NCBI GenBank assembly: GCA_973895155.1
Contig: OZ316898.1
Span: 7,985,079-8,049,078 of the forward strand
Reading direction: 5' to 3'
Origin: Marsupella aquatica
Taxonomy: Eukaryota; Plantae; Marchantiophyta
Length of the DNA stretch: 64,000 nucleotides
Positions 59-25,500 of this stretch are shown piece by piece; positions within the stretch are counted from its first letter, which is position 1, and every line of letters starts with the position of its first letter. The position numbers and the translations under genes are program-made. Below the pieces are notes generated by a model. The model worked only from the letters and a program-made list of their open reading frames with translations. It searched no databases and had not been told where the DNA came from.

Positions 59-2410
59 ATGCTGGGACACAAAATGTTTTACCCACATTCTCCCTTTCCT
101 CCTCTGGCTCTTCCGCCATCACCACCCCCCTCCTCCTCAGAGACGAGTACCTGCAGCATAATTCATCAAACCGTTCGAGACAAAGCGATAGCGAACGACT
201 ACCTGAAGCGGGAGCTCAATAGTAGCAGCAGCGGCGGCCTGGAAGCGATAGCAGCTGTAGCTCCTCACGAAGTCCTAGACGGAAGAGGAGATGCACAGCT
301 GTTAGGAGCAGCTTCTCCCCAGATTTTAGACCATCGCAGTAGTGTTGTTGATGCTTTCCACGAGACCGGTGAATTGGGATGCGTGGTACTCGGGGCAAGG
401 AGACACTTATCTTGGGGAGTTGTTCACGATGAGGAGCAGCAGCAGCAGCAGCAGCAGCATCGAGGCTTTCACAACCAGACCAGTGACAATGCTGGTCTTG
501 CGAATGTCATTCCTCCCCCGCCCTTTACTCCCATTCATGATGTCCTGTCTCCTCCGTGTTCACCAATGGCTAGTCCTGCAATGCCGCCCTCTCCAGACTG
601 CAAAGTGCCAGAGCCACGGTCGGTGCTGGACTTGGCTACGAGCCCTCGCCCCAGCATACGTCATTCTGCTGCTGCCATTCATCCCTGCTATGACTTTGGG
701 GTCAGCTCGCTGGGAGGAGGAGGAGAAGGTGGTGCTGGTGGTTTGCCCAGTCCCGCCCTTCTAAATGCCGCGGATGATGATTTCCTCGCTGAATTCCAAC
801 GACGGGACTCTTCTTCAGCAGCGCAGCTGTTGGGCCTTGACGAAGACGATGAAGACTCGTCACAACGGGATCCTCCCGCAAAATCCACCATTGACTGGCT
901 TCAGGAAACGAGCCAATTGTGGATGGATTCGCTCATGGACGACCTCACAGAAACTCCAGTCCATTCTTCTTCTCTTCCTCGACTTGACGAGGAGGAGGAC
1001 TTCGGAGATGAAGCTCGTACTGACACTCCATCGTCTTCGACTCCTTGCCCTTCTGAATTATGTCATACGAGTCCCAGTTTCGATCAAGAGCAGAGCGAGT
1101 ACCAAGGTGACGACGACGACGACGAAGAAGAAGAAGAAGTGGAGGAAATCTCCTTCAGGAAACGAGGGGGAGGAAGAGGAAGAGGAACAACTGACTTTTG
1201 TTCTGCAGCAACAGCAGCAGCAGAGAAGGATTCGTCGACCACCTTGAGAGAGTCCAATCGGAATGGCGTCCCCAACCGTGAATCGGAACACAAACTAGTG
1301 AACTTGCTGCTGGGCTGCGCGGAGGCAGTGTCCACCGGGAGTTTGAGTCTGATAAATCCACTCTTCGCTCAGCTCGGCGAGCTGGCGTCTCCGGAGGGAA
1401 CCTCCATGCAAAGGATAGCCGCCTATTTCACGGAAGCTCTAGCAATCCGATGCATACGTCTCTGGCCACAAATCTACCAACCTCTGCCGCACAATCTCGA
1501 GCTCTCCGAGGAAGACTGCGTCTCAGCTTTCCACGTTCTCAACCACGTCAGTCCTTACATAAAATTCGCTCATTTCACAGCCAACGACATCATTCTGCAG
1601 GCGTTCGAAGGATGTGACCGTGTGCATGTGATCGACTTCGATATCAAGCAGGGGCTCCAGTGGCCAGCATTGTTTCAGAGTCTAGCTGCTCGCCCGGGTG
1701 GGCCTCCGTCTCACGTTCGAGTCACGGGGGTTGGAGAGTACAAGGAGGACGTCCAGGACACCGGTGATCGGCTGGCAGAGTTCGCAGAAGCTCTGAATCT
1801 CGCATTTGAGTTCCATGCCGTAATTGACAAGCTAGAGGACGTAAGGCTGTGGATGCTCCATGTGAAGGAGAAGGAGACAGTAGCAGTGAACTGCATGCTC
1901 CAGCTTCATCGAGCTCTGCAGGACTCGGAGAACGGAATTAGGGAGTTGCTTGGTTTGATCACGAGTACCAAGCCCAAGGTCGTTGCAGTGGTGGAGCAAG
2001 AGGCGAGTCACAACGGGCGGTTCTTAGAAGGCAGGTCTCCTCGCTTTCTAGAAGCTTTGCAGTACTATGCAGCACTCTTCGACTCCCTGGACTCGACCAT
2101 GCCGCCCCAAAGCAAGGCCAGGAAAAAGGTGGAGCAGTTCTTTGCACGGGAGATCCGCAACATTCTGGCGTGCGAGGGGCCCGAGAGAACAGAACGCCAC
2201 GAGGGGGTTGGGATATGGCGCTTGCACATGGAGAGGGGAGGATTCCAGAGTGTACCCATGAGTAAGCGGGCGAGAACGCAAGCGGAGCTCTTGCTCGAAA
2301 TGTACGGGTGCAAGAGCTACACCATTTCAGAGGATGAGGATGCTCTCATTCTCGGGTGGCAAACCCGTTCTCTCTTCACGGCCTCCGGTTGGGCTCCCAA
2401 GTTGTTGTAA
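59..2410 (+). CDS. GRAS transcription factor, SCL28/DLT-like subfamily, intronless
   Basis: 783-aa ORF with a disordered acidic, polyQ-containing N-terminus. GRAS motifs: LLLGCAEAV, VHVIDFDIKQGLQWPALFQSLA, LEDVRLWMLHVKE (SCL28/DLT-like), RFLEALQYYAALFDSL, C-terminal ASGW. Confidence 0.93.
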   Translation: MLGHKMFYPHSPFPPLALPPSPPPSSSETSTCSIIHQTVRDKAIANDYLKRELNSSSSGGLEAIAAVAPHEVLDGRGDAQLLGAASPQILDHRSSVVDAFHETGELGCVVLGARRHLSWGVVHDEEQQQQQQQHRGFHNQTSDNAGLANVIPPPPFTPIHDVLSPPCSPMASPAMPPSPDCKVPEPRSVLDLATSPRPSIRHSAAAIHPCYDFGVSSLGGGGEGGAGGLPSPALLNAADDDFLAEFQRRDSSSAAQLLGLDEDDEDSSQRDPPAKSTIDWLQETSQLWMDSLMDDLTETPVHSSSLPRLDEEEDFGDEARTDTPSSSTPCPSELCHTSPSFDQEQSEYQGDDDDDEEEEEVEEISFRKRGGGRGRGTTDFCSAATAAAEKDSSTTLRESNRNGVPNRESEHKLVNLLLGCAEAVSTGSLSLINPLFAQLGELASPEGTSMQRIAAYFTEALAIRCIRLWPQIYQPLPHNLELSEEDCVSAFHVLNHVSPYIKFAHFTANDIILQAFEGCDRVHVIDFDIKQGLQWPALFQSLAARPGGPPSHVRVTGVGEYKEDVQDTGDRLAEFAEALNLAFEFHAVIDKLEDVRLWMLHVKEKETVAVNCMLQLHRALQDSENGIRELLGLITSTKPKVVAVVEQEASHNGRFLEGRSPRFLEALQYYAALFDSLDSTMPPQSKARKKVEQFFAREIRNILACEGPERTERHEGVGIWRLHMERGGFQSVPMSKRARTQAELLLEMYGCKSYTISEDEDALILGWQTRSLFTASGWAPKLL

Positions 2411-2580: not shown

Positions 2581-2825
2581 GACCTTCCTTCCAGCTTGGA
2601 CGCTGAAGTTGTAGACAGTCAGAAAGAGGCACTTCAACTTCAATTGTGGTCTCTCAATCTCTAGAAAAAATTCTGGTCTCAATCTCGAGGAGGACATCAA
2701 AGTAGGCTGACTTTATCGACCTTCATCCCAGCTTGGACTCTGAAGCTGTAGACAGTTAGAAAGAGGAACGTCGAGTCCAATTGTGGTCTCTCAATCGGAC
2801 ATTAAGGCAGGCTGACTTGATTGAC
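2581..2825. repeat. Diverged tandem duplication (~140-bp spacing) downstream of the GRAS gene
   Basis: GACCTTC..CCAGCTTGGAC.CTGAAG.TGTAGACAG...CAATTGTGGTCTCTCAAT starts at 2581 and again at 2719. Confidence 0.8.
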
Positions 2826-4087
2826 TAAAGAGGTTGCAAGCTTGGGCTGACACTCAAGCTGAAGGAGATTGGAAGAAACACGGCGAAGAAAGGATGTGCC
2901 ACCAAAGCTGCATTTTCTTCCACAAGAACCGCACAGAATGCTACTAATTAGAAATTGTGATGATCAGTATGGTAAGGTTTGATTTTCATGTGGGAATGAG
3001 GATAATTGTCTACCCCCGATCATTACATCCGATCATTACATTTAGACAGACATAGACGACCTCGATCGATTATTTTTTTCTCTGCTATTGAGACAGATAG
3101 ATACAATTTTTTACGCCCTCATTCATCATTATTTCATTCATTCATTGTAATATGATTTTAGTGATCTGAAGCCCGACATTTGTAAAAGTGCAGCTTATTC
3201 CATGTACAGCATTTGGTGCTGAGTCCGCTCCTCTCTGCAAATCTGTTTCCTAGTTTGGCAAACGCGTTTCATATCCTTCCATTAAAATTCATGCACAGAT
3301 TCGATGATGGAGATCAATTCGCACGAAGCTGATAGATGAAATCTTGCGCGAGAAATTTTTCGTTGCGTTACTCTCCGGCCATTGGAAACAGATACTCAAC
3401 TCTCTCGCACTAGTCAAGTTTTTGGTATTGATCGTATATCCTGATCATTACATGAGAATCAAATTATCATGAGCTCGAATTCATCTCAATGCTAGTCGCA
3501 GGGACTTTGCTTCAACTTTCACACAACGATTGCTATCTCACATTCTCCAGAACACCACGAGAAATCGATTGTGTATGGCCCGGTCAACTCGAGCGCCTTT
3601 ATCCCCACCAAGTTTTGGCTAAATGAGTCAAAATGAAATGGCTGCTGCAATCTTCAACAGCTCTTTCCACTAGTACAAAGATTCCTTGTCCCAGCCATCT
3701 ACTGTACTTTGGGACTTGCAACGACCAAATAGCATTGAGCTGGAATCCGAACGGGCTTGATGCGCACAGGTACTAGGATGTCAGGCCCGGTCACCCTTGC
3801 ACTGTACCCGTACCCTGGTCCATGCTGCCATCTTCCTGGCTCTGTTTTTACTTGTTTTGCCCGCAGGCAGTACGTGGGTTTATGAGGGCTTTACTAGGAA
3901 GTTTACTAGGAAACAAACTCCAATGCTCTGTAGATTCGCGCCCCTGTTGCTACGTCCATTCCCTGCCAGTAATCTGATCCTTGGATTGCAACGGTTCGTC
4001 GGCCAACCAGATATGACGGCCCACAACACCGATTAGGACCGACTTGGCGCACGTCTGCCTGTGGAAAAGCTTGACCTTACCCAGGAA

Positions 4088-6287: not shown

Positions 6288-6542
6288 CCCAGGAATGTCA
6301 GAAATGAAATTCAATGCCAACATTCTCCCAAATTCCAAGGAGAATTAACTAATGTAAAAGTACACTACCGACATTTTGAGGATGGGTGACCTCTCTCAAA
6401 CCAAGCCGTTTGTGAAACTCTGGATTTTCTCCATTTTTTGAAGTCGCCCATCCCCAAATACCAAAAATGACCTTTACAGGCACCAAAATTGCCAATTGTT
6501 TTTTTTTCTAGGCTTTGGACATTCAATACCATCTATGAGTTG

Positions 6543-7574
6543 ACCACACGTTAAATCTACACCGCATTAATGCTCCCCAATTGTCTTGGGGCCCCGTACA
6601 TTGCCCATCCCAGTCCCCAATATTGCTGCCCGCTCCAGCCCGAGCTTGCCAGAACATAAACTAAGACTCTATCATTTTGTCACTCGCTCCGACCCGATTA
6701 ACATTGTGCCATTGACTTTAGGTTTATGTTTTGGCACCCTTCACTTTTTGTTGCTTGCTCCGGCCCGATCAACTTTGTGCCTTCAACTTCTTCCTTGTGG
6801 AGTTGTGGTTTATGTCCTGGCAACATTTTTGTCCAACAAAGTCATGCTTACAGAGTCTAAGTGTTCAAGTATAGCCTAGTACTTTGGTGAAGAATCATGA
6901 TTGATAGTCTTGGTCGTTGTTCTGCCAAATGTTTTCTCTATGGAATTGTGGTTTATGTTTTGACAACACTTCTTTCCAATTGAGTGAGTCACCTTTGTTT
7001 CATAATAGAGTCTAAGTGTTCAGGCAAAGCTTAGTACTTTGGATAAGCGTCATGATTAATGATAGAGTATTGGTTTATGTTGTGTACTTTTTTCCAATTG
7101 AGTGAGTCACCTTTGTTTCATAATAGAGTCTAAGTGTTCAGGCAAAGCTTAGTACTTTGGATAAGCGAATGATAGAGTATTGGTTTATGTTGGGTACTTC
7201 TTTCCAATTGAGTGAGTCACCTTTGTTTCATAATAGAGTCTAAGTGTTCAGGCAAAGCTTAGTACTTTGGATAAGCATCATGATTAATAATAGAGTATTG
7301 GTTTATGTTGTGGCAAACTTGGGCCGGTGCAGGCAACAACAATGGGGACTTGGGCCGCAGCGAACGAAAGCAAATGAAGGGCGCCAGAACATAAACCCAA
7401 AGTCAACGATACAAAGTTGATATAGCCAGAGCAGGTGACAAAATGATAGAGTTGTGGTTTATGTTCTGGCAAACTCGGGCTAGAGCAAGCACCAACATCA
7501 GGGACTGGGACAGGCAATATACGGGCCCCAGGACAATTGGGGAGCATTAACGCAGTGTAAATTTAACACAAGGT
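6543..7574. mobile_element. Non-autonomous Mutator-like foldback element with ~230-bp TIRs and 9-bp TSD
   Basis: 6543-~6775 is an inverted copy of ~7320-7574. Flanks are TATGAGTTG (6534-6542) and TACGAGTTG (7575-7583). Confidence 0.85.
6970..7310. repeat. Three ~110-120-bp tandem units inside the foldback element
   Basis: TTTCCAATTGAGTGAGTCACCTTTGTTTCATAATAGAGTCTAAGTGTTCAGGCAAAGCTTAGTACTTTGGATAAGC occurs three times. Confidence 0.9.
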
Positions 7575-8306
7575 TACGAGTTGCATTCGCTTCAATAGGT
7601 CCACTGGCTCGACACTTGATTCCTTCAGAAGGTTAACCACCATTCAAAGAGTGGCAGAACAAAAAGATGCACAAATACGTGAACGTCTCACGATGAACGG
7701 ATCAATATAACCCTCCGAACTTAAGCTTTGACTTTGAAACGTGAAAAATGAAACCTCAGCTTAGTTATTATCAAAATACAATCACACTGAAGTTCCATTC
7801 CAATGAGATATAGCCATCGATCAAAATTCGGTGATCACCTCTGGACCAGTCTCAACAAGTAGAACACAGAACATCCCGCGTTCTGTATCTACGTTGCTAG
7901 CAGGAGTGACCTGGGACTAAACGTGAAGTAGCTTCTCAATCGAACAATTTTGGTACAAATAATGGAAGTCCCTACGAGACATCTCTGAAGGTTTACCTAT
8001 CACAACCTTCTTTCAACTCCTCTTAAAAAGCGTAAGAGGATTTCTGGTTCCTGTACATCACACTGGTGTTTGCTGTTGTTGATATTTCTGACAATAGTTC
8101 CCTCTAATTTTGATTCATTCAACCCATCTCTTGACAGCGGGGATCAATACCACTTAAAGATTCAGCATCGCACACATTGTGCTGCTCGGAGCAGGGCGTA
8201 TTGCACCATTCCTGCAATACGTATTGCAGGATTTTGCAAGAGAATTCCAAAAGAGGGAATGGTCCTTCTATAATAATTACTGAAGTTCGCAGCAGGAAAA
8301 AGAACA

Positions 8307-10827
8307 TCAGGAACTATCCATGCTCTGGTCCATAACAAGACTGCTGTTCACTGGTTGGTCCTGTCTGACGGCTCCAAATACAAAATTGCTGGAGACCATA
8401 GGGCTGCTTCCAGAGCCGAATTGAAAATGTGTAGGACCTGTCGTGTTTGAGGTTGGGGAGAAACTGAATAGAGGAACTTGGCTGCTTACGGGGGTCTGAG
8501 TTGGATAACCAAATCCGAAGGCCACCCCACTCGGAGTGTTCAGCATGGGCGCATGCGTAACAGAATTTCCAAACACTTCCACCTCATACTCCCGTAGTTG
8601 CTGGGCAACAGCTGCAAACTCAAATACAAGATTCAGGTATTGAGGGAATTCTTCAGCCTATGAAACGTATGCATGGACTCCCTAAACCGGCAATGTCAAA
8701 ACAATCAGGCCCAGAAAGTGCTGCTGAGCTAATAGGAATGCAGAAAAGGGAAATACACAGAAGACCGCTTGTAGGTCCATGGAGGGTAGAGAGACAAGAA
8801 TCTACTAAATGAAGCAAAATCGGAACAAGAGTATCATGTAGCGATGAAAATCATACCAGTAGTTAAATTTATGGAAGGTCTGCGATCCTTCACCCACTGA
8901 TAACATTCTGACAAGCGCCAGCGCTTATGCCGCATCAAATACGCAATCACTACTGCAGGTGATCTGATTGAAACAAGAAAGCAGTGAGCATTCAAAAATA
9001 AACTGACTATGAAGTATAAGCCCCAACAAGTAGCCGACCTACACAACTTCCACGCTAGGGCTAGGGAGACACCTGTTTTGTCCAGACATGCAATGCACCA
9101 ACACTCTTGCTTTATCCAGCCTGCTTTGTTCTGCGCAGGAACGGAGCACAACTGTTATGAATGTCAATTGACTTGGTCTGCCTGTTCAGTACTGAAAATA
9201 TGCTCATCTAGAACCTCACCATAGTCTCTGACATGCACGAACAATCCTGCGGACGAGAGATACCAATGCACTCCACTCGACTAGATGCTGTGACCTTCAA
9301 CTTGACCAGGTTCTCGAAGATAAGAAAACCACTACTCTCGACGCCTGGTAAAATTACCAATATATTGGACGCACTCATCCAGCGGCAACGTTTTCTCTTC
9401 CTTGAGACTGTAGTATGTAAATGAATTCTTGTACAGGTTCTGACATGCAGGTACAGTCTGCACAAGACAAAACGAACATATCATTCAAACTGCACACAGG
9501 ATCGTTCATTGCTTGGCTGCATTCTGGTCATTCAATTTTCACTACATCCACATACATGCTCACGTATAATAAGAGAACATCGCTCTGTAGACTGTAAGAA
9601 AGTCAGAGACAATGGGCAATACCGAGTCCATCATTTTCCTGCCTGGAGCAGCTCTAAGGATGTAGTAAATGCCCATCTACTAGAAAAGTGGGAGATATGA
9701 CGACAATAGGACGAGAATCTAGCTGAATTTAGCGGTTAAGAACAGAACATCGAAATCATTCACTATCCCTGTCAACTTCCTCGAGAAATTGGAAGCCAAA
9801 TTAAGTGCACCCCGTTAAAAATGAGTTATCTTGTCGAGGTGGTTACTTAGGTACTACTGATTGTTCGACATAAGCGAGAAGGCCTTACGATGCAATGAGG
9901 TGCCTAAAGGATTCCACAAGATCATACAGGTTGAATTCTTCATTTTCGACGTACTAGAATGCGAAGACCGACCGAAATATACCTTCTGATCACCAGTCCC
10001 GTCGGATGAGAACGATCCAGCTACTCTTACTTCCAACCGGAAATACCATTCACTGATCAAAACCTTCATAGCTTTTGGGCACAAAGTAGCCATTGTGCAT
10101 GAAGGAAACTTATTGAATATTAAGCACTGTCGACGCGCACGAACTACGCGAAGGAAGGTGAGGGGGGAGTCTATTGCACGAACAAAATTCCTACAACATA
10201 GAAGGCCTTAATATTGTTTATATTGTTAAGTTGCCTGTTAGTCCATCCGCAAACTCACGACCATCGGTCTTGGCGCATTAATCCGTTACATGGAAGCCAT
10301 TTAGAATTCGTCATGACGCAACTGTGAGCACAGAAGAAGCCACCACTTCCGGCCGTAGCCAGAGTCGAGATTTCAGTATCACCTGAAGTACCTCAAGCAA
10401 ATAGAGAGACAACTCTCCATGAAAATAAGAGAACGGACAAGAGAGGAACAGAGAAGGAATGTTCAGTTGCAAATCCAGGGGCAGCGATAGAGCTCTCGTT
10501 AAACAGAGGGCTTTAAAAGAGGTCAACGTTAGGAAGTAGATCTACCTCACGAAAGAAAAACTTAAAAGTGACAGTGGGAAGCAGAGGACATACGTTCAGT
10601 ATACGAGTGATGCCCTGGGCCTTCAGAAGCTCTGCTCTAGATGCATTATCGTAGCTGCCCAGGTACAAAAACGCGGGTAAAATTTCGGTGGAAAATGCGC
10701 TCTGCTGCGGGCCCTTTTCCGTGGCTTCTTGTAATCGATGACCGCAGATGCCACAGACCTCTCCATCCTCGAACTTATGGTAATGTCCACACACAAAGCA
10801 CGGATTTTCTCTCTCCCTCTTCCGCAT
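8307..10827 (-). CDS. IBR5: Dual-specificity (MAPK) phosphatase IBR5; exons 10827-10594, 9457-9358, 9130-9073, 8963-8857, 8611-8307
   Basis: N-terminus MRKRERENPCFVCGHYHK and LYLGSYDNASR match IBR5. GT-AG splicing with consistent phases rebuilds the catalytic VLVHCMSGQNRSPAVVIAYLM. Confidence 0.93.
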
Positions 10828-12029
10828 GATTGTTACTGTTCCAAAATTCAAATCGCTTTTAACCCAGCAACATGCACTTATTCTCCCTTCGTGTTAAGAT
10901 CTCGACGTCAAGATCCCCGGCCGGACTATGACCCTAACTTGACTAGAATATTTTGACGTCACTCCACAATACTACCCAACTGGCTCTCTGAATTCAATTC
11001 CTGTCCGAACCCTAATTTATCTCCACTCTCCCGTCACTCCAATCCGAACCAATCTAATCCAATTCAATCCCTGACAATCCACAAGCGCTCGATCCGCTTC
11101 CCACGTTCAAATCATCCAGTGCCGATTTCATACACGATCTGCCACTCCTGAGCCTGAATGTCAAACAACTCCAGACTAAATCTGCGTACTAGACGCAAAT
11201 TTTCTAAGAGCTTCGTTCAAATCCTCTCCATTTCAAGCTCCAAATCTGCCTCCGAATCTCCGTCCTCCCTCCCTCCTCTCCTCTCCTCTCCTCTCCCCCC
11301 AAACAACAAACACATTCGCAAGCAAATTTTCGCCCCGACCACTTTCGAAGGTCCGTACACCACCACCACTCCTGCAATCTCCTCCCGTCCCACCGACCAC
11401 CCAACTCCTTGATTGCGTCCGTTCCTCCTTCGCCTCCTCCTCCTCCCTCCTCACTTCCTCTCCGAATCCTCATCCATCCTCCATGGCAGGACCTCTACCT
11501 CCAGCCAGATCATCACAACCTCGCAAAAGAACAGATTATCGCCTGGGCCCGTTCCCGACCGATACGACTGGACCGCACCCCTCCTCCCTCTACGCAGTCC
11601 GTCCCGTCTAGCCCCAAACTCTCTCGCACGGTCAGGTCACTTCACTTCATTTCCCCGCTGCCTCCCTTCCTTGCCTGCCTGCCTGCCTGCCTTCCTGCCT
11701 CGCCTGCCACCGTCGGCAGACCCCCCTCGTAATCCAGTAGAGGTGTACGTACCTCTGCTGCAGCAACGGCAGAATTGTCGTCCCTTACTGACATTGACCG
11801 ACCGGACTAACAACACCAAAAAGCGCATCACCCCCCCTGGCCCCCTCTCTGTACAGACGGTACTGTTTCTCGTAACGTAATTCAGTAAACTCTTTCACGA
11901 CAAAAAAAGACAAACTACTAAAAGCGCATCACCCTGCTGTCGCTGCTCACCAGCAAAGGGGGCAAGGGGCTGACCACTGGCAGAGCAACGACGAGCCAGC
12001 AAAACTCCGCGCACGCCCGACGACACCAC

Positions 12030-13866: not shown

Positions 13867-14593
13867 GCATTTGCTTTCCTTGTCCGTGACATGACTCACA
13901 TTTAGACCAAAAGACCATCTGCAGTAATTGGCATCTGATCCTTAACACATATATTTCAGGGAAAGCTTGCAAGAAAGAGAAGACAAGAGTTCGCTTATGT
14001 TTTAACAATATCAGATCCAAAGGTCCATTCAGACAATCTTCTAACCAAAAGGGGTGCTCAGGTACTGCATTTAATACTGCATGACACAATGAGAAGAGAC
14101 CCAGAGGTCCCACCTCTAGAGATGCTAAAAACTTGGGCCAAACTTGCACTATTCACATAAGAATTTTGGGGGACCCACTCCAGTCCATGTAGGATTGAGA
14201 GAAGTCTGGAATCAAATCTGGTCAGCAAAGTGTTTCAAAACAGTGCAAGTAAGTGCCATGGAGGGTTTTGTCAGGACAGTTCAACAAATGTTGTTCTTGC
14301 TAGCCAGCTGGTCCTTGTTGCAAACCAGTGCAAATGCTTATTGCCCTAAAAATAAAGGGCTTTAACCCAAGTTATGAGGGGTTGATTATTACTTTAGTAA
14401 TACTGGATAGTTTGAGGGACAGGGTTGCTTAACACTTGGAATTTCATGTGCGTTAAGTGAAACTTGTGTTCCAGAGTAATGGCATGACGTCTTGACATCT
14501 TTTAGGTTCAAGGGAGTCAAGTTGTGAAGCTACTAAGGAGACCCCTGTGGTAATATAATGTAAACCGGCTACAAAAAGTAAGCTGACGGTTTA

Positions 14594-14996
14594 TGTTGGG
14601 ATAAATTTAGACCGAACAAGACACTGTCAACACATATGAACAAACATCCATAAACTTCGGCACTAAAAGTACGTGGTTCACCCCGTCTGGGCTACATCCA
14701 TGGCCGTGAGACAAATCCAGTAATGCAAAACAATTACACCCGCCATAGCCAACATGCTAGAGCTCCTCCTCTCACCCTCTCTCCCAAATAGTGAACCAAG
14801 TGTGAACACAAGTTTGTGTTTCCCTTGGGTATACCCCCTCCCATGGTCTATGGGAACCTTGAACTCAAACAAGTGTTATCCTAGTCTGCTGAAGTCAAAA
14901 TAGTACTATGGAAGTCAATAGGTTATACTAGAGGCATAACCTAAAAGTTTACAGGTCATACTTGAGTCAAAAGTGTAAACAATGTTATTTGAGTCA
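14594..14996 (-). mobile_element. Possible degenerate copia solo LTR
   Basis: The minus strand has a TGGATGTAG...GGTGAACCACGT U5-like motif and ends in CCCAACA. The right boundary and TSD are uncertain. Confidence 0.35.
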
Positions 14997-15544
14997 GTTT
15001 CAAGGTTTTGAGTAAGTTCATCGAGCTTTGCCAGTCCATCCAGGCTTCATAGACAACAACGAGGTGAATCCTGGTTTCTGATTTTCCATAATACACCTAA
15101 ACACCTACAAGAAGTTTAGTTTTACATATGTCAATAAGAGCAGAGTAGTTTTTTCATAATGAGCTGATCCAAACCTTGACTTTGCATTTGTTTGGGGTTG
15201 CCTTGAACCTAAAGAAGAAACCCATCTAACAAAAGGACAAACAATATACTTTGGGCTTGCACCTGTGTCGGGTAGCCACAAGGGGATGACACCCATGGAT
15301 ACAACATGGACCCTTGCCAAGAGGGAAAGAGTATTGAACTAGGGCCCCAAAGTGACCAGCCTGTGCCAAAGAGAAACCAAAACTCCCACCCACATACCTC
15401 TACACCCCTTGCATGAACCTCTCGGTCCCAGGCCAACCCCTCCTGGCCAACTGACCCAAGCCACTTGCTTTTGACTCTACATTCTTCTCCAATAATTGCC
15501 CTGAAAATTTCACCAAGGGTATTAAGTTCGATGTACTCTACCCA

Positions 15545-16088
15545 AGCTGACCAAATCCTTCGTTCAAAGCCTCCCCTGGTACGCTTCTGCTTATGTTCAG
15601 GTGAACATGCTTTCGAGATTACCCAAATCCCTCATTCAAAGCCTATTTCACCTCTGTTCATCTTCAGGTCCGAATTTTTTTTCATCGCTTCCTAGATTTG
15701 CCCACATCCTTCATTCAAAGCCTCATCTACACCCCTGCATGTTCTCGTCCGAATTTCTTGTACATGCTTGTCCATAGTTTCCAAATCCTTCACTCCAAGC
15801 CTCGTGTACTACAGATTCTCTCTAGATTTCCCAAATCCTTCATTCAAAGTTTGTCTATCAGACCTCTGCTGATTGTTCATGTCTGAATTCACTGTGCACG
15901 CTCTCTAGCTTCCCAAATCCGTTATTCGAAGCCTCGTCTATTACATCCCTAGTATTTGTGTTCTCGTCTGAATTTCTTGTGTACATGCTTTTTAGATTGC
16001 CCGAATCCTTCAGGGAAAGCGTTGAACACGCACATACCGATGTTTATGCTGACATCTGAATTTCTTGGATATGCTTTCTAGATTGCCC
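15545..16088 (+). repeat. Degenerate tandem array (~7 units of 50-90 bp) abutting SelO
   Basis: Core CCAAATCCTTCATTCAAAGCCTC...GAATTT...ATGCT..CTAGATT recurs at ~15551, 15622, 15701, 15780, 15830, 15912 and 16000. Confidence 0.85.
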
Positions 16089-17999
16089 CTCCGTCCTGGA
16101 AAAATCCATCTGCGACTCGCCCAAATGACCGCACAGCTCTCAAATGGCATTGCAACTAATGGGTCATGCTCGCAATATGCAGGAGCGACACTTGCCGATC
16201 TTCCAAAGTCATGGACGTTCACATCCTCTCTTCCTCCGGATCCCAAGTTTCCCACACCTCTGATATCTCACGAGACACCGAGAGATGAGATCCAGCCTCG
16301 TCAAGTTCTGGGCGCTTTGTTCACATGGGTAAGACCGGAGGCACAAGAGGAGCCAGAGCTGTTATGTGTGAGTCCTGTTGCTTTGAAAGATCTAGGCATA
16401 AAAGAAGGAGAGGAGAGAACTGAGCAGTTCAAGCAATTAGTGGCTGGGAACAAATTGCTCGGGTGGGATGAGGAGAAGGGCGAGGGTTTAGGGTACTCAT
16501 GGGCAACGCGCTATGGTGGCTGGCAGTTTGGCTCATGGGCGGGTCAGCTGGGAGATGGAAGAGCCATATCGTTGTTCGAAACCACAAATCCGAGCACAGG
16601 CATACGCCATGAGCTCCAATTGAAAGGAGCTGGAATTACACCTTATTCTCGGTTTGCGGACGGCAAGGCGGTTTTGAGGTCCAGTATCAGAGAGTTTGTG
16701 GTCTCAGAAGCTCTGAATGCTCTACGAATCCCTTCAACCCGAGCACTCTCTTTAACTCTGCTGCCGAATCAACGGGTTCGGCGTGAAAGATGGGAACCAG
16801 GAGCTATTGTGGCGCGATTTGCCCAGACGTGGCTTCGGATAGGTTCTTTCGACATTCTCCGAGCGAGAGGAGAGCGCGTGTTGATAAGACAGCTGAGCAC
16901 TTACATCGCTGAGAACGTATTCGATGGGTGGGCATCGCTTCCATCACGAATCCCTGACTGTGCGTCTTCTCCTTCCTCTGGAATCGACAGTAAAGCAATT
17001 GAGGGCCCAGCAGGTGCAGAGGAGAATCGATTCACACGGCTGTACCGGGAAATCGTCCGCCGTAATGCCAGAACAGTGGCTGCATGGCAAGCATACGCTT
17101 TCACAAACGGCGTTCTGAACACTGACAACACCTCAGTTCTGGGCCTTTCTATTGACTTTGGGCCGTTTGCGTTCTTGGACAACTTCGACCCCAATTACAC
17201 GCCCAACCATGATGATTATATGCACCGATACTCGTACCGTAATCAACCGGATATCATATGGTGGAACTTGGTTCGGTTGGGCGAGTCGTTGGGCGAGCTC
17301 ATGGGCGCAGGTGCCGGGGTTGACGAAACAGTGTTTGTGGAAACGGGCGTCCGCGACGAAGAAGCCGACGAGCTCATCTCAAGAGCAGAAGGGATCATTA
17401 AACGAGCTGGCGAGGAATACAAGGCTGTGTTTTCCGACGAGTACAAACGGCTGATGACAGCGCGGCTTGGCCTGAAAACTCAAAAGGAATCAGATTTTGA
17501 AAATTTGTTCAGCGAATTACTTGATACTATGGAGGCGTTGGAGCTGGACTTCAACCAATTCTTCAGGAAGTTGAGCAATATTAATGTTGCTAGTCTGGAT
17601 ACCGATGATAGAAGAGAGGAAGTGGCTGGCGTTTTCTTCCACCATGAAGGCGTCACTGGTCTTGGAAACACAGAAGAGTCGGCACGAAAACGAATAGCAG
17701 ATTGGCTTGATCGGTGGCAACTCCGGGTCTACGAAGAGTGGGGTCCTGATGGCCAAGATGAGGAGAGGCAAACGGCGATGAAGAAAGTCAATCCCAAGTT
17801 CATCCCCAAAGCCTGGATTTTGGATGAGCTCATCAAGAGGGTGGAGAAAGGAGGCGAGAGGGAAATCCTGGATAGGGTGTTAAATCTGGCATTGCATCCG
17901 TTTGAAGAGAGATGGGATTGGGACGAGGCAGAGGAGGAGAGATTCTGTGGTGATGTGCCGAAAACTGAGAGAGCAATGCAATGTTCTTGTAGTTCTTAG
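16071..17999 (+). CDS. SELO: SelO/FMP40 (UPF0061/YdiU) protein adenylyltransferase, fungal-type, intronless
   Basis: Motifs QFGSWAGQLGDGRA, ELQLKGAGITPYSRFADGKAVLRSSIREF, NGVLNTDNTS..IDFGPFAF and C-terminal QCSCSS. First ATG is at 16071 (the ORF track starts at TTG 16065); an alternative ATG is at 16125. Confidence 0.95.
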   Translation: MLSRLPLRPGKIHLRLAQMTAQLSNGIATNGSCSQYAGATLADLPKSWTFTSSLPPDPKFPTPLISHETPRDEIQPRQVLGALFTWVRPEAQEEPELLCVSPVALKDLGIKEGEERTEQFKQLVAGNKLLGWDEEKGEGLGYSWATRYGGWQFGSWAGQLGDGRAISLFETTNPSTGIRHELQLKGAGITPYSRFADGKAVLRSSIREFVVSEALNALRIPSTRALSLTLLPNQRVRRERWEPGAIVARFAQTWLRIGSFDILRARGERVLIRQLSTYIAENVFDGWASLPSRIPDCASSPSSGIDSKAIEGPAGAEENRFTRLYREIVRRNARTVAAWQAYAFTNGVLNTDNTSVLGLSIDFGPFAFLDNFDPNYTPNHDDYMHRYSYRNQPDIIWWNLVRLGESLGELMGAGAGVDETVFVETGVRDEEADELISRAEGIIKRAGEEYKAVFSDEYKRLMTARLGLKTQKESDFENLFSELLDTMEALELDFNQFFRKLSNINVASLDTDDRREEVAGVFFHHEGVTGLGNTEESARKRIADWLDRWQLRVYEEWGPDGQDEERQTAMKKVNPKFIPKAWILDELIKRVEKGGEREILDRVLNLALHPFEERWDWDEAEEERFCGDVPKTERAMQCSCSS

Positions 18000-20475
18000 A
18001 TGCCTTCAGGTCAACTTATCGGGCAATTTATGCGGCACTTGTACATAATTATCTTGCAGCGGTAATAACATATGGTCAGGCTATGATCCTGACGTGTAAT
18101 TTGTGGGCTCATGATGAACTTCTTGGGTTGATCCACCAGAATAATCTGTTTTACTTCCAATGTCCGGCTTTGCATATCTCACAATTTATCTGGTCAAATG
18201 AGAATTCATTGGGATGGTTACCGCTCGTAAGTTGATAAATTCTCGAAGCGTGATGATTCCTGTCATGCACTCCTACTTCTCAAGTCACTTGCCGGATGAG
18301 TATTGTGGCCACACTCGGTTTGAATCTGTTGCCATAACTTGCTACATTTCCAGATGGAGTTGGTCTGGCATCTCTGTCGATTGTCCGAATGTTCTCCAAC
18401 GCTCAACTTGATTACGAAATGGAGCTAGGCAAGATTGGGCTAGACGAGACCTTCCCTCAAAACAATCATGTTTTCACCCTTTTCAATCAGGGGCTCTGCG
18501 ACTTTCGTTCGCTAGACATAACAAAACAAGCAATTGTCCCAAACCCACGAGATGGCCAGTGATTGTAGGTGTTTCTCCTACTTACATGTTATTTTCTCAC
18601 GTTGTGCTTTCTCTTTGATTAGTTTCCTTTATAACGCTGCACGTGCTCTGAAAACTGTTTTCCAACCCGAGAGAGAAGAGGGTAGAACCTGGTCAAAGCT
18701 AAAAATCGAGGTGTCATAATTCTTACCACTTCGTCGGGTCCACGTCAAGACGGATCCTCTTGGCAACAGGCAAACAAGGCGTTGTGAGGAAAATCAGCTG
18801 GTCGTGCCGGGGCTGTGAACTCTCGTTGTGTCAATCGGGGTTTTCATGACTTGGACACAAAGTGCAGTCGATCGAATCGACTGGGCATGGCTTTGCGCGG
18901 TGAAATCACAACTTGATGACAGAAAGCACAACTTTCAGCAATGCGTACATCTTTGAGAGTAAATTTGCATCATTGGAACAATCTACTGGGTGATCTGTCC
19001 ATTTGCGGATCTGCTTGAGAGTGATTCCGAATTTCCTCTTCTCTTCCCCGTAGAGTGCCGATCTAGAGAGCTCTGTATCTGAAGACTGCGTCAGGGCCAT
19101 TGTAGTATTTCTGCGGACTACTTTTGAAGGCCCAATCTTTCGGTGGTCCTCAAAATAATCCTTCTCTGTGATTGAACGTCCATGCATCGCACGGTGTAGT
19201 TGTCATGGCCAATAATTATGGCCTACATTTCATGTTCCAACTAGGTTTTTTTGCTATGTCTCTTCATGTCAGGGCAAGCACCGGATCCATGCAATGCAAC
19301 TTCCGCATTAAATACATGAGTTCAGAGTGGACGGCGAGGATAAGTCTGGCAGCTGTTCACAAATCGGTCCTCGAGCACGTACTTAATTCAGGCTGGAGTG
19401 TAACTGACTACCGGATATATTTGAGATAAGTGTGCGATAAGTAACCAATAATCAGGGGAGCATTCTCTCTCAGAATTAAGGTCTCAGTGGCCCGCAATAA
19501 CTCATAAGTTTTTACCTCATGATCGTCAACGAAGACTGCTGTCGAATCAGGAGCAAAGGCCACCAGTACAGCCTATCCAACCCTAACTGGAACAAGTAGT
19601 CCAAAAAAGCTTGTGCATTCCCTAGACAGCTCGCCCTTACCTGAATTATGGACTTTAGACGTCGTTCTGAGGATATATTTTGACAGCTATCGTGAGTGCC
19701 GGGATCCCAGCCTTTTTTACAGCGTAAGGTGAAAAAAACTACAGGTCGTCTGAGGCTAAATGAGACATGTTCACTGCTGTCTGACAATAACTGCTGATCG
19801 GTATCGTTTTCCTACTATATACAGTGCAAGTCACAGATGCCTACATTCCTGTGAAAAAATCGAGAAAAGTTGCAACCCTGGATCATTGCCACAACGTAGG
19901 CTTGTAAAGACTCCTCCAAGCGAGAGACTCTGTGAACACTCCCAAAAAGCTTCTAACTTGCTACGGACATCAGACAAAGATCCGTAGCACAGAGGAACTG
20001 ACGTGGAGACCACTGCAGACATGCTAATCAGACATGTAAGACTATAAACGATTTTTCTGACGATCTGCTAAAGTTTTCCCCAATTATCAAAGTATGCTCC
20101 CCCAAAGTTGTCCAGTGGGACTTCACAGAGGCGTGGCCAAAAACTGTAGTTGGCTAGTGATATCAGACAAGAGCACGTCATAGCAGACTCTACGGTCTCA
20201 GCCAGTGAGGAAAGGGATAGTGACCACGTTTTTCGCAGACGTCCAGCCACGAACTCCAACTCCATCAAGCACGACACGGAGATAAACCTACCTAGTTCGT
20301 TCGTTTTTCAATCCGTACAATTGGAATCAATTCCCTTTCATGCAACGAATGAAAACTTGAAAGCACATGCAAAAATATTGAGACTGCGAGAGGGCACAAA
20401 GGTAATATCGCCTTGAATGAGAGCAGGAAGAGACAGGTCCACTTTACTGTGATAGCGACGATACCCACATCCACC

Positions 20476-22542
20476 CTACAGCAATGGAGAAGGCACAGTC
20501 TGATGGGGTAATGTGAAAAGATCCTTGCCTGCAAATGGTGAGGTCCACTCCGGAACCCCAACACCAGCTGCATTTCCACTGTCGCTGACTGGCTTGTCTT
20601 GAAGCCCCAAAACCCCCGAATTTCCCCTACTTGAGCTAGTCCATGTAAGGTAATCTATAGAGCTCCTGGGTTCCTCTCCGTCTCCTGTGTAACCGGGTGA
20701 AATTCCTTCACCAGCTAACCCTAGCCTAGGATTCCCACCCTCTGAGAGATTTAACATTGATGAAAAGCTGCTGGAAACCCCCCAAACGCTAGGTTCTGAG
20801 GTATTAGAGGGCGATGCACCCATGCTCCAATCGATATTTTTGTAATCACATCCACTCGAAACCCACATACTCCAATCTGCAGGTCCGCCTGGAAGGCCAG
20901 ATCCCCAACCTGAGAGAAATCTGGGAGCGGATTGACTTCTTAGATGAGAGGTAGACGCAGGTATACTGGCAGATGGCCGGACATTATCTCGACCACCAAA
21001 AGAATTACTGCAAATACCCCAAGCTGAAGCCTGCACATCTGATCTATTTGGCGGCGAAAGGTGAGCTTTCACAGGATCCTCTGCATGCTTCGAAAACATT
21101 CCCCCTATCAACTTGGCATTGGACACACCCTTAAACATCGCATCACCCGAAGTACCATTGAAAAACAGGACACTGGACGGTGAGGAGGCGCCGACAACAC
21201 TTCCGTTCCAGCTGGAGGGAGACAAAGAAGGTGAGACTGAGGCAGACCTGGCATTCGATGGAGGGGTTATGGGAGATTGCGGCAGCTGTGGTGAGACTAT
21301 CGGATCTCTCGGGGTCAAATGCAAACCCTGTTCTCGGCGAGACGAGGGCCCTTTCTCATGCTGTGGAGCCCTAGATTCCAAAGAATGACGACCAGGAGAA
21401 GGATAAGAGAGAGGAAGAGCTTGGGACGGATTCCGCACGCCATTGTTAGCCATTCCCGGCAGTACTCTCGGCCAATCTGTCCCCATCTGAGATCCGCTCC
21501 TAGCCGTAGAGAGGGTTCCATCTACAGACCCAGGAGAACGGGAAAGAATAGACTGATACCCTTGAGGCCTGCTCTGCACCGTATGGAGTTCCTTCTCTTG
21601 TCTCTCATGGTTCAAAGCTTGGAACAAACCACTCCCTTGCCCTTGTGCATTCATCAAATAAGGTGAAGTAGTAGCGGCACTAGTGGGTTGCTCTTTACCT
21701 CTATCCTGTAAGGGACTACTCCCATACTCTGGAACACCACGGGGTTGAGGATGTCGCTCACGCAACCAATTCGCAGCTTTGTCTAAATCTCCTTCACAAG
21801 CGACAACTGCCCTTTCAATTTCAACCCGGAGGTACTTAAATCGGATTTCTAAGTCGGCAATTCGTGCAAGCTCGTCCGCTATATCTATTTTCAGAGGCCG
21901 CTCCGCATTCCAGTCTTCCTTCACTTGTCCTTCGCCTCCTTCTAAGAGCCAAGCCACTGAGTGCTCCACATGCCCTTCGTTAAATATTAGTGCCATGGTC
22001 GCTCTGTCGTGTGAGAAACCCATAGCTACAAGTTGCTGGGCGAGTGCTTCCAATTTGCGAGACATCAAGTATCCTGTGCAGCGATCCCTAAGCTCCTGTG
22101 CCCGACGCTCCTTCTGTCGCTGATGCTTCTTCTCATTTTTAAAACGGATTTTATCTCTCTTGTCAGATCCTCCCCCGACTACGCCTGGTGGTTGCCCCTT
22201 TTTGTCTTTCCCATTTAGGTTTTGTAGCTGATCCTCAGATTCACCGGAGCAACTGCCATTATTCGACATTGAATCGTACTCGGAATAGGATCCAACGACA
22301 CTGCCCAAATCATCGGAATCGTCGATGGATTTAAACCGCCCACTTTGATTGGACACCATTGTTTCTGAAATTGACGAGTCCAGCAAAGAGTGGAACATGC
22401 CCGTGCCCGGGTTGTAAGCACTGGCTGCCATTCCTGCACCTATAGAGGCGTGCTTCGAAGAAGCCTTCCACTCCCTGCCCTGGGCTTTTTCGCTGCCTTT
22501 CTCCCCTGTGGTACCCTGTCTATTCCTCGATGCAGGAGGCAT
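20476..22542 (-). CDS. Plant UBA-domain protein (UBA/TS-N family), single coding exon
   Basis: Conserved blocks SAYNPGTGMFHSL, SNNGSCSGESED, KNEKKHQRQKERRAQELRDRC, UBA LVAMGFSHDRATMAL, and C-terminal EWTSPFAGKDLF. Probable ATG at 22542 (MPPAS). Confidence 0.88.
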   Translation of the reverse strand: MPPASRNRQGTTGEKGSEKAQGREWKASSKHASIGAGMAASAYNPGTGMFHSLLDSSISETMVSNQSGRFKSIDDSDDLGSVVGSYSEYDSMSNNGSCSGESEDQLQNLNGKDKKGQPPGVVGGGSDKRDKIRFKNEKKHQRQKERRAQELRDRCTGYLMSRKLEALAQQLVAMGFSHDRATMALIFNEGHVEHSVAWLLEGGEGQVKEDWNAERPLKIDIADELARIADLEIRFKYLRVEIERAVVACEGDLDKAANWLRERHPQPRGVPEYGSSPLQDRGKEQPTSAATTSPYLMNAQGQGSGLFQALNHERQEKELHTVQSRPQGYQSILSRSPGSVDGTLSTARSGSQMGTDWPRVLPGMANNGVRNPSQALPLSYPSPGRHSLESRAPQHEKGPSSRREQGLHLTPRDPIVSPQLPQSPITPPSNARSASVSPSLSPSSWNGSVVGASSPSSVLFFNGTSGDAMFKGVSNAKLIGGMFSKHAEDPVKAHLSPPNRSDVQASAWGICSNSFGGRDNVRPSASIPASTSHLRSQSAPRFLSGWGSGLPGGPADWSMWVSSGCDYKNIDWSMGASPSNTSEPSVWGVSSSFSSMLNLSEGGNPRLGLAGEGISPGYTGDGEEPRSSIDYLTWTSSSRGNSGVLGLQDKPVSDSGNAAGVGVPEWTSPFAGKDLFTLPHQTVPSPLL

Positions 22543-25500
22543 TGCTGCAACTGCGCTGAAACCACCGCTCGCAACAATCCTCCACAGCGCCCCCGAAAGA
22601 GACAATCTGAAAAGCGCAAACCATCCAGCAATTAGCTATCCGTTCGTGCAACAATCTCTGTATCTGTTTCCAAAATCAATGCATTTCACGCCAACCCACC
22701 AACAAAGTAAATGAAACCCACTCCACACTCGGCACGCAACTTGGCAAGGTCCGGAATGGTTATGGTTTCAATGCATCAATGCCGCAAAAAGCAAGCAAGT
22801 TTGAGAGGAAGCTTTGGTGATCGCAGGCAGAACTGCATGTCGATCACAAAAATCCAACCGGAGACCGCTTGCTTCTTACTTACATGATTAGAACACAATC
22901 CCGGCCAATTTTTGGAGAGAGTCGCGAAGCGGCTTGGTTACGGCAACGAAAAGAAATCCCTTTGGTCAGACCACTGCACGGAAAACCCTTATCTATCGAA
23001 CAACAGCAGCTCGTGGAGGATCATATGGCGTCTCAAATCAGAAACCTGTCTCGGAAACGATCAACTATCACTCTTCCCTTCCCGCGGAGAGTCCGCCAGC
23101 AACAGCGACGACACCAATTCGTCAAAACGACAACTGACGGGAAGGATGCCCGAGTAGAAGCCAGAGATCCAAAACCACGGTACGGTGACTACGACGACGG
23201 GGACAGTCACACCGAGAAGCTCAGACTCAAGGCAGCATGCAATCGGGCATAGAGGATGAGCACCTTACCACCGATTTGCCTAGACCACGCGTCTGAACGA
23301 AGCGCTTCGAGATGACGAGCAAGAAAAAGAGTGACAGAAAACCACAAGCCCGGGCTGCTGCGATGTGCTGGGCCGCCAAATCCAGGAGGCAGAGATCGCT
23401 TGCCCTTCGCCAACTCCTCCCAAATTTGCCGCAAGTTCACGGATAACGATCCCCGACGCGATTAGGGCAGAAAACTCCCACCAGCGCTAGTTCACGAGAA
23501 GCAGAGAGATTCCTCACGAGGGAAAGCTGCATTAATCGAAACCAGCAGATATGACGGAGAATCCATAGGCAGGCAGGCGGGCGAAACCCAGCGGGCACCA
23601 GCTTCCTTCTTCCGCACTTGCACCAACGAACAAACGCACTCCCACCGATCGGGCAGATTAGCAGCAGCACTCCCTTCCCCGCTCACTCGCGACGACAATC
23701 CCAATCTTCGACAAACGAGTCAGTCAATCCGTCCAGGTCCTCCTCCGTCAGCCAAAAGCGGAGCCGAGCCAAGCCAACCAGAAGCCGAGCGGGGCCGTCC
23801 AGTCCAGAGAACGAACCGAAGGAACCTCTCGAGGTGGCGGGATTCTTCTTCCTCGTGCCGATTTCAAAGCCCGCAGCAATCGCGCATTAACCAAACTCCT
23901 CACACCTGCGTGACTAAGCGAATCCCCTCGACCCACGATTGGATCGCATGTCCATCAGACAGAAAAGAAGCTCTTAATCTTCGGCGACTTTGCTATTTGC
24001 CATCCATCCCACAACTCCACTCCCGACTCTGCCACAGAAAAAGGTCAGGTCGAATCCTCACGGCGACGACGAAGAACGGATTCTGCAAGATAGGTCCCCG
24101 TCATACGCTAGCAGTGCTAGCAAAGTTCCGGGAATTGCCATCCACGCGGTGCAAGTAATCCCATTGGCAGTGCAGGGAATATTCCAACTACTAACGGTTC
24201 GGGCCGTGGATTAGCTGAATGGATGCTCCAGATCATTCAGAAATTTCCATCGCGTGGATATTTCCATATACTGCTCAGAATTTCGCAAACTCAAGTAGCA
24301 TCCGACGGGAGAAGTCCATAGTAAAGGAAGAGATCTGATTGGGTCTTGACCGGAGTAATCAACACCAATTTATATACGTCCGTAGGATTCAGGACTGGAC
24401 GGCTATAGGGATCCTTTCCGGATTATAGAAACAATGTTCGTTAGATTCATGGTTCGTGCTCATATGGTATACCTCGTGAGGCGCGAGCAGAGTAGCACAC
24501 TTTTCTGTCAGTTCCGTGCCATGTCTTCAGAGCCAGCTGGTGGCAACGGGGCCGCTGCGTGGCAACGTGGAGGGGCCACAGGGCCACAGAGTAGGAACCG
24601 AGGGGGCCAGAGATTACGACAGGCCGTCTACTATGGTACAATGAAGAACAAATGTACCACGGTGAAAAATATTACTGCGCAGTAAATCGTTGGCCGCCTT
24701 TATGGGGGCCAATTTGACTCTAACTTTGACTCCGCTAGATACGAGAGACGAACAAAAAGGAAACATCAATAAACACGTGTAGGGAATGGACACAGTGATG
24801 AATTTGGGGAACCAGCCGAAAAAGCAAATCCCAAATGACGGGAAAATGGATGTCTGTTCGAATCACGAATTCCGTCTCTCGAGGCAAATTGTTGGAAAAG
24901 TGAAGGCCAAAAAGGGATGGAGGGAAGAAAGAGAACTGTAGAATAGAAGAGCATCAAATAGGGATGGGGTTGGACACATTCATGATTATTGTATTCGAGC
25001 GAATGGAAGTGGACTATGTGGTCATTAGTGGCCGGTCCTTTTTGGGGCCAAGAGCTGTCCAACCATAGACGTCTCATCAGAGCCTCGAGAGCTGCCGCAG
25101 CTTTTCTAACGTCCACTGCAACCCAGAGAGTTTACAACAGTAATGACAATTTTAAAAGATTTGCTACCGCCACAGCTTGGTTTTACAGCCTATGGGTTTG
25201 CAAGAGATTCTGCCAGAGCACTATATAGCCCCTCAGGTTGGAGTGCTCCTACTAGGGGCAGGAGAGGCTGGTGCTGCCAATAATAGGGCAATCTAGTCAA
25301 AAGTGACTCCCCATTAGTGCGTATCAAAGCTGCACATTCCCTGAGAATTTTTGGGCAGCTGTGATGTAAAAGTTCTCTGTCTGTGGTCATTACCCAAAGT
25401 GGGATTTTGGTCAAAATTACCCTGCCTGGGTTTTGGTTTGAGACTAGTAACACAATCATCATCAATTTTTCAATGGGTGCTGACCATTCTTGAAAGGCAC

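Follow-up and report, generated by a model that had tools for sequence, protein, structure and literature searches.

The liverwort Marsupella aquatica carries in its nuclear genome, between two plant genes, a SelO gene of fungal type. The gene lies in the 64,000-nucleotide stretch that we analysed (contig OZ316898.1, positions 7,985,079 to 8,049,078 of the forward strand; hereafter the window), where its coding sequence occupies 16071..17999 on the plus strand and comprises 642 codons and a stop without introns, as judged from the open reading frame (ORF), the Pfam match and the alignment with its homologue in another liverwort, Calypogeia fissa. We consider it very probable that a single SelO gene passed from a Leotiomycete fungus into an ancestor of these liverworts and was kept there, and that it encodes a mitochondrial-type AMPylase whose location, substrates and benefit to the plant we infer from its relatives. 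The original prediction had described an intact, intronless ORF of 642 amino acids between an IBR5-like dual-specificity phosphatase (DSPc) gene and a UBA gene and had proposed its acquisition from an ascomycete, for example a Leotiomycete; the ORF list and the Pfam matches agree with the first point, and the phylogenetic analysis given below sustains the second.

Similarity and phylogeny of the SelO gene

The reading frame runs without any stop or frameshift, and the mechanical ORF list begins it two codons earlier, with a TTG at 16065. Its translation matches the Pfam family SelO (PF02696; E = 4.4e-114, 382 bits) over residues 84-603, covering profile positions 19-461 of 466, and in the structure database it matches the SelO of P. 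syringae (PDB 6EAC, E = 8.7e-70). Alignment with solved SelO structures (6EAC, 6K20 and 6III) showed that the active-site set is kept. It includes the LKGAG motif with the nucleotide-binding Lys185 (16620..16634, plus strand, aligned with 6EAC and YdiU), the LRSSIRE segment with its Arg and Glu, Arg250 and Arg256 of ARFAQTWLRIG, NTDN at residues 350-353 and Asp362. The segment with NGVLNTDNTS and IDFGPFAF (17106..17174, plus strand), aligned with 6EAC and identical in the fungal relatives, contains the metal-binding Asn and Asp and the DFG-like Asp of the pseudokinase active site, and the protein ends in ..RAMQCSCSS, in which CSCSS (17982..17996, plus strand) places a redox Cys at the position of the animal selenocysteine. 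The roles given here to individual residues follow structural work on the P. syringae protein. All catalytic residues are identical to those of the fungal relatives in the alignment, and the predicted product is a SelO/Fmp40-type AMPylase of pseudokinase fold whose active site is complete and whose C-terminus has the redox Cys.

The sequence motifs were also found to be of fungal type, as had been proposed at the outset. ADGKAVLRSS, NGVLNTDNTS and ..RAMQCSCSS are common to the window protein, C. fissa and the Leotiomycetes; Ophiostoma has Arg for Lys and yeast Fmp40 is near-identical. In contrast, Wolffia and both bacteria compared have ADGLAVLRSS and HGV(L/M)NTDNMS in place of the fungal forms, and LSCSS terminates every plant-type, algal and bacterial row of the motif alignment. 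The named proteins among the best 120 database matches were all from Leotiomycetes, two lichen-metagenome bins included, except for two C. fissa entries (~83%). Identities to the window protein were 79% for Hyaloscypha hepaticicola, 80% for Lachnellula, 78% for Mollisia and 74% for Botrytis; the closest fungal proteins (83-84%) were metagenome and Logan sequences, and no fungal sequence among these matches exceeded 84%. Plant-type SelO was missing from the best 120 matches, though Marchantia, Riccia and moss proteins stand in the database, and a search seeded with the SelO of Mesostigma returned mostly bacterial proteins together with Chlorokybus, Porphyridium and Wolffia, and no plant-type SelO from a liverwort. 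The closest fungal relatives (L002, L003, L004 and L005) come in part from sequencing runs and not from soil metagenomes; this lineage may accompany samples of plants or bryophytes.

Maximum-likelihood (ML) trees placed the liverwort proteins among those of fungi. In a tree of 73 rows, with bacterial and plant-type SelO (Mesostigma, Chlorokybus, Wolffia and Porphyridium) as the outgroup, the window and C. fissa proteins were sisters (99 in the Shimodaira-Hasegawa-like approximate likelihood ratio test, SH-aLRT) within a 20-row clade (99) that lay within the Leotiomycetes. The fungal part of this tree was roughly taxonomic, with Catenaria, Coemansia and Calcarisporiella branching early, followed by a basidiomycete, yeasts, a Sordariomycete and the Leotiomycetes; the plant-type SelO of Wolffia, Mesostigma and Chlorokybus joined the bacteria, several supported branches away from the window protein. 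In a second tree of 51 rows the liverwort pair (100/100), with a shared stem of 0.08, and the 15-row clade enclosing it (100/100) again fell inside the Leotiomycetes. Furthermore, the approximately unbiased (AU) test rejected a topology that keeps the 45 Leotiomycete-type fungal rows as a clade without the liverwort pair (57.9 log-likelihood units, p = 0.00054). On these trees, the liverwort pair is best placed as nested in, or sister to, a metagenomic Leotiomycete lineage, with no special closeness to H. hepaticicola.

Gene structure points to the same source. At four fungal loci (P0001, P0002, P0006 and P0022), whose tree positions flank the liverwort pair, SelO is a single uninterrupted ORF, so that the lack of introns in the window gene is inherited from the donor. 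These fungal loci are gene-dense, and their neighbouring genes are drawn from one conserved set, comprising those for a V-ATPase subunit, an aldo-keto reductase (AKR), an ERD2 receptor, Scd6 (FDF/LSM14) and an amylase. The idea that the gene is an ancient SelO paralogue inherited vertically and lost in other plants, or that it moved from plant to fungus, has in its favour that a plant carries the gene and nothing more. Apart from the liverwort pair, which is placed at a tip, the gene tree follows the taxonomy of the fungi, the AU test rejected exclusion of the pair from the Leotiomycete rows, and the Marchantia, Riccia and moss proteins of the database are missing from the best 120 matches; we regard both versions of this idea as having a negligible probability.

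Integration, leader and age of the gene

The gene order noted in the original prediction recurs in C. fissa. At locus L001, on a 24-Mb contig, SelO lies between the DSPc and UBA genes, colinear with the window and in the same orientation, with nucleotide identities between the two species of 74% in the DSPc region, 79.7% in SelO and 79.5% in the UBA region. A second, homeologous locus (L006, on a 41.7-Mb contig) likewise has the order SelO-UBA. The genome of C. fissa was duplicated recently as a whole and has a genome-wide peak of silent divergence (Ks) at 0.05 (bioRxiv 10.1101/2025.04.01.646537). The two lineages share one transfer, as the site and orientation are the same and both have a tandem array made from the 5' end of the gene that is absent from the fungal loci. 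The transfer is old and predates both the split of the two species and the genome duplication of C. fissa.

Since liverwort tissue harbours Leotiomycetes and fungal proteins reach 79-84% identity to the window protein, we also considered fungal contamination or a chimeric assembly. Junctions were examined on assembled contigs of public sequencing runs, not on raw reads, and one of these runs (X1) may be the source sample, whereas X3 and X5 belong to other studies. A 4412-bp contig of X1 spans 14967-19378 with 0 mismatches and a depth of 22.6, compared with 16-26 for the neighbouring contigs. X3, which carries another organism label, contains identical contigs over the 5' junction and through the gene, with a depth of 62-66 that equals that of the flanks, and in X5 a contig with 2.5% divergence and a depth of 3-5 crosses the 3' junction. 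Thus contigs from three studies bridge the junctions, both of which are spanned, and in X1 and X3, where the contigs are long, gene and flanks have equal depth. In addition, plant genes flank SelO in three separately assembled loci, no fungal sequence among the best 120 matches comes closer than the 84% given above, the divergence from C. fissa fits a long-resident gene and the fungal genomic context is wholly different. Contamination and chimerism are excluded for practical purposes.

The first 19 residues of the protein, MLSRLPLRPGKIHLRLAQM (16071..16127, plus strand), are basic, without any acidic residue, and resemble a presequence; there are 4 Arg or Lys among the first 20 residues and one acidic residue among the first 44. 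In alignment with fungal N-termini, the pattern MLSR..RP..RLAQM was found to be common to the window protein, to Leotiomycete proteins, of which MLSRVLSRPRKIHIRLAQM (P0001) is an example, and to the in-frame sequence upstream of both C. fissa copies, where MLSRLSLRPRKLYMQLAQM precedes the annotated SelO starts at both loci. Because the N-terminus of the window protein matches the fungal ones, the leader is the presequence-like peptide of the donor, and its similarity to the N-termini of fungal proteins suggests that it may direct the protein to mitochondria. A conserved in-frame upstream ATG in C. fissa (L001 9947-10000; L006 9962-10000) restores a leader beginning MLSRLSLRP... The two SelO models of C. 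fissa (630 and 635 amino acids) probably start too late, by about 13 and 18 codons.

Immediately upstream of the gene, at 15545..16070 on the plus strand, lies a tandem array of ~6-7 degenerate units with a spacing of 72-88 bp, two of the spacings being of double length; Tandem Repeats Finder (TRF) gave a period of 79. The units are copies of the gene's own 5' end; each combines the 5' leader with the first codons and lacks an internal stretch. The homologous array of C. fissa (L001 8930-9950; L006 9100-10000) has units of 101-131 bp that tblastn can read as residues 1-18, and no such tandem repeat was found upstream of SelO at the three fungal loci examined. As the array is common to the liverwort loci and missing at the fungal loci, it is a derived feature made from the gene. 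The reverse possibility, that the array gave rise to the SelO start codon, was rejected, since the N-terminus matches fungal ones and the fungal loci have no array. The array places several ATGs and short ORFs before the true start, for example a short ORF from 15985 that ends just before 16071. The differing unit lengths (72-88 bp in the window and 101-131 bp in C. fissa) point to concerted turnover. Farther upstream, ~1 kb from SelO, a high-copy repeat at 14400-15100, probably a fragment of a transposon, has a summed contig depth of 500-9000, compared with ~23-65 for unique sequence, and shows numerous partial contigs and joints.

The ratio of non-synonymous to synonymous divergence (dN/dS) between the window and C. 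fissa was 0.089 for SelO and 0.137 for its UBA neighbour, and 0.029 between the two fungal relatives compared. As the transfer is old, the intact frame reflects purifying selection. The original prediction had taken the lack of lesions as a sign of either a recent transfer or selection; selection stands, and a recent transfer does not, given that the gene predates the species split and the duplication in C. fissa. Codon usage in SelO correlated with that of fungal SelO at r = 0.57 in the window and r = 0.44 in C. fissa and with that of host genes at r = 0.35 and r = 0.48, respectively; host genes correlated with fungal SelO at r = 0.10. Codon usage is therefore partly ameliorated toward the host, as measured on few genes.

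Regarding transcription, run X6, which is guessed to be RNA and carries a third organism label, contains a 2236-nt contig with ~94% identity and a depth of 64 that covers 16041-18056. It includes a leader of ~186 nt derived from the array and ends ~100 nt past the stop codon. At a likeness cut-off of 85%, X6 had no depth on 18137-19900 or on 15182-15575 and up to 11 on the array. This contig looks like a transcript of the SelO orthologue of a close relative, with the RNA label being a guess. The segment downstream of the stop codon (18000..18360, plus strand) is probably the 3' untranslated region (UTR), in view of the end of the X6 contig, and has diverged strongly from C. fissa when compared with the flanks of the UBA gene.

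Silent-site divergence and the rest of the window

Several observations weigh against a single transfer from within a Leotiomycete lineage followed by retention and expression. Forcing together the 13 fungal rows of the enclosing clade without the liverwort pair was not rejected by the AU test (p = 0.129), which affects the nesting; the donor clade contains no named genome, its closest members being metagenome and Logan sequences; and the evidence for transcription comes from one run with a guessed RNA label. Furthermore, the silent divergence of SelO is ~3-4 times that of its flanks between the species, yet level with the flanks between the C. fissa homeologues. A simple model with a single transfer and equal rates does not predict this pattern.

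Between the window and C. fissa, the proportion of silent sites that differ (pS) was 0.57 in SelO, with a silent divergence (dS) of about 1.07 and a fourfold-site difference of 0.487 (41 transitions, Ts, and 71 transversions, Tv); the corresponding values for the UBA gene were 0.24, 0.28 and 0.229. Between the C. fissa homeologues, pS and dS were 0.052 and 0.054 for SelO and 0.040 and 0.041 for UBA, both genes lying at the Ks peak of 0.05; this comparison comprises ~20 silent differences per gene, and a constant excess of about two-fold is only marginally excluded by it. The excess is even along SelO (pS 0.46-0.65 in windows of 80 codons) and is also seen in the 3' flank, for which the global alignment with C. 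fissa scored 24 (shuffles 9±4), compared with 158 and 302 for UBA flanks of equal length. The diverged segment spans 16071-18360 of the window and 9947-12335 of L001. Decay of methylated cytosines as the cause of the high dS was not supported (Ts:Tv 41:71; observed to expected ratio, o/e, of CpG 0.84 in the window gene, 0.68 in C. fissa and 0.64 in UBA), nor was a mosaic or a gene-conversion tract inside SelO, pS being uniform across the 80-codon windows. When the gene was searched against the window and three C. fissa loci by tblastn and blastn for a relic of a second SelO copy, only the 5'-end copies of the array were found. When changes were polarised with three fungal genes, derived states common to both liverwort copies were found at 12 of the 36 polarisable fourfold sites and at 10 amino-acid sites; 25 amino-acid changes are specific to the window and 32 to C. 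fissa, sites with different derived states in the two being included. The two liverwort copies have a stem that is shared but short.

We ranked three explanations for the silent-site excess. The first is that the copies are orthologous after one transfer and that this segment mutates ~2-3 times faster than its native neighbours, either constantly or in episodes; possible causes are the chromatin or methylation state, the lack of introns and the nearby repeats. In agreement with a raised rate, dN and dS are both elevated with a dN/dS that is still low, and the excess is uniform over the gene and reaches into the UTR. The few differences between the homeologues allow a ratio of up to ~2.4, compared with a fourfold-site ratio of 2.9 between the species. 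The homeologue point estimate of 1.3, both genes having values at the genome-wide peak of Ks, speaks against it, and the Ts:Tv and the CpG o/e of SelO (0.68-0.84) are unlike those of methyl-cytosine decay; we hold this first explanation only tentatively.

Ranked second, and less probable, is that a gene acquired once was duplicated in tandem long ago and the copies were then lost reciprocally, so that those now compared had separated well before the species did. Old paralogy of this kind would account for a SelO dS that exceeds that of the flanks between species and equals it between homeologues, and for the fact that the entire SelO segment, its 3' UTR included, is more diverged than the adjacent non-coding DNA; moreover, the 5'-end array reveals unequal exchange at the locus. 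However, no relic of a second copy was found in the 64 kb of the window or, in C. fissa, up to 10 kb on either side, the matches listed hold no second, closer C. fissa protein, and both copies would have had to persist for long before the losses.

Far less probable than either is the third explanation, namely independent or repeated acquisition from related fungi, or overwriting of a resident copy by newly arrived DNA of a fungus on the basis of homology. The deep silent divergence would be accounted for, as fungal lineages show a dS of 1.3 at 93.5% protein identity, and intracellular Leotiomycete symbionts are a standing source of DNA (bioRxiv 10.1101/2025.04.01.646537). Nevertheless, it is unlikely because the site and the orientation are identical, because a derived 5'-end array missing at the fungal loci is shared, and because the liverwort proteins are sisters; their shared stem and the derived states that they share at fourfold and amino-acid sites argue in the same direction. 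We likewise see little chance that a resident gene of fungal origin was overwritten more than once by symbiont DNA through homology-guided re-acquisition. If true, genes would keep flowing from ericoid-type mycorrhizal fungi to the liverworts that house them, in place of a one-off event. A single Leotiomycete transfer with subsequent retention is the reading that we carry forward.

The genes around SelO belong to the host. The upstream gene (8837..10851, minus strand) is multi-exon and encodes the IBR5-like phosphatase, with a DSPc Pfam match at 8837-9151 and a further exon at 10525-10836; this exon shares 88% identity with C. fissa, at a pS of 0.27, and in C. fissa the neighbouring gene is also annotated as DSPc. 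The downstream gene (20476..22605, minus strand) encodes a protein with UBA-domain matches (Pfam UBA_7/UBA) and 92% amino-acid identity to C. fissa. At the start of the window, an ORF for a plant-specific GRAS-domain protein (59..2410, plus strand) has its best matches in Marchantia paleacea and M. polymorpha (63%), which indicates that the DNA around SelO is that of a liverwort. The best C. fissa GRAS entry reaches only 54% identity and comes from another chromosome, even though the UBA and DSPc genes make C. fissa the nearer relative; its real orthologue has probably not been annotated or falls beyond the length range of the search. Since this sole C. fissa match is not an orthologue, GRAS was dropped as a further baseline for dS. 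Extending the C. fissa locus past UBA revealed no additional annotated gene.

Elsewhere in the window, ORFs for a copia-type integrase and reverse transcriptase were observed at 41-43.4 kb, and an ORF for a CACTA-type transposase runs on the strand opposite to them; a very AT-rich kilobase (40001-41000; GC content 0.29) adjoins these transposon ORFs (41044-44700). A serine acetyltransferase ORF (60092-61834, minus strand) has ~300 residues before its SATase_N domain, which is unusually long if the ORF is a real gene model.

Proposed history, function and significance

The history that we propose begins with the entry of one gene from a Leotiomycete fungus of Helotiales grade into the nuclear genome of the common ancestor with C. 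fissa. The piece, intronless and with a short 5' leader and the presequence-like peptide, landed between the DSPc phosphatase and UBA genes and was then retained by purifying selection, and amplification of the 5' end of the gene after integration generated the array that now forms its upstream region, from which the gene may be transcribed. A plausible route is the intracellular symbiosis between the rhizoids of Jungermanniales and Leotiomycetes, and regeneration from somatic cells, although speculative, could complete it. In this regard, an intracellular ericoid-type symbiosis of C. fissa with the Leotiomycete H. hepaticicola has been shown experimentally (bioRxiv 10.1101/2025.04.01.646537).

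In yeast, Fmp40 is a mitochondrial AMPylase of Prx1, Trx3 and Grx2 (PMC11140801). By analogy, the liverwort protein would most likely be imported into mitochondria by means of the retained fungal presequence and could AMPylate mitochondrial redox proteins (peroxiredoxin, thioredoxin and glutaredoxin) as Fmp40 does. The plant would thereby gain a mitochondrial-type SelO beside the usual chloroplast-type SelO of plants, presumably to its benefit.

Comparison with related systems shows what is retained from the fungus and what has changed. Leotiomycete SelO (UPF0061; annotated as 'Selenoprotein O' in H. hepaticicola, and including the metagenomic clade P0001-P0018 and P0022) has 79-84% full-length identity to the window protein and shares with it the presequence-like N-terminus, the catalytic motifs, the C-terminal CSCSS and the lack of introns. 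Unlike its fungal relatives, the window gene lies between plant genes and not in the setting of V-ATPase, AKR, ERD2 and Scd6 genes, has an array of its own 5' end upstream, is under a constraint in liverworts that is ~3 times looser (dN/dS 0.089 compared with 0.029) and has a codon usage part-way to that of the host. Fmp40 of the Saccharomyces type belongs to the same family and also has ADGKAVLRSS, NGVLNTDNTS, C(S/G)CSS and a basic N-terminal leader, but it is only ~40-45% identical to the liverwort protein. Native plant SelO and its algal relatives share the Pfam family and the catalytic core with the window protein and differ in phylogenetic group and motifs. Plant SelO genes are multi-exon and their products are located in chloroplasts. 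For Arabidopsis, SELO is given as a chloroplast protein by Fichman et al. 2018, as cited in PMC10537201.

Transfer from fungi to bryophytes is as such already well documented. In streptophytes, 1,809 families with horizontal gene transfer (HGT) have been listed, with fungal RDS1, YANB, EUPF and FB-lectin genes in liverworts (PMC12513842), and such transfer has also been documented for Marchantia (PMC12890914). As in the window, the documented cases involve an intronless foreign gene that has genuine plant flanks and repeat-rich surroundings and has been retained; the window SelO differs from them in that its donor class matches the intracellular symbionts of the hosts. SelO or UPF0061 is not named in the main text of PMC12513842, the supplementary HGT lists being outside that search, and our literature search found no paper pairing SelO with a liverwort.

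The added interest of this case lies in the donor class, which is that of the hosts' symbionts, in the co-transfer of a targeting-type peptide and in the silent-site excess. Few of the bryophyte transfers that are known in bulk have been documented singly with synteny of the site, read support, selection and a donor class matched to a symbiosis. As the recipient C. fissa carries Leotiomycete hyphal coils in its rhizoids, the case ties this symbiosis to a route of gene transfer. The silent-site excess offers a handle on the mutation of a foreign gene after its arrival, and, being a rare genomic change, the insertion common to both liverworts could be used as a marker for the phylogeny of the Jungermanniales. 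Lastly, the cargo is unusual, as it would be a regulator of mitochondrial redox proteins and not a secreted or defence enzyme, and it may supply these liverworts with a mitochondrial SelO that is otherwise missing in plants.

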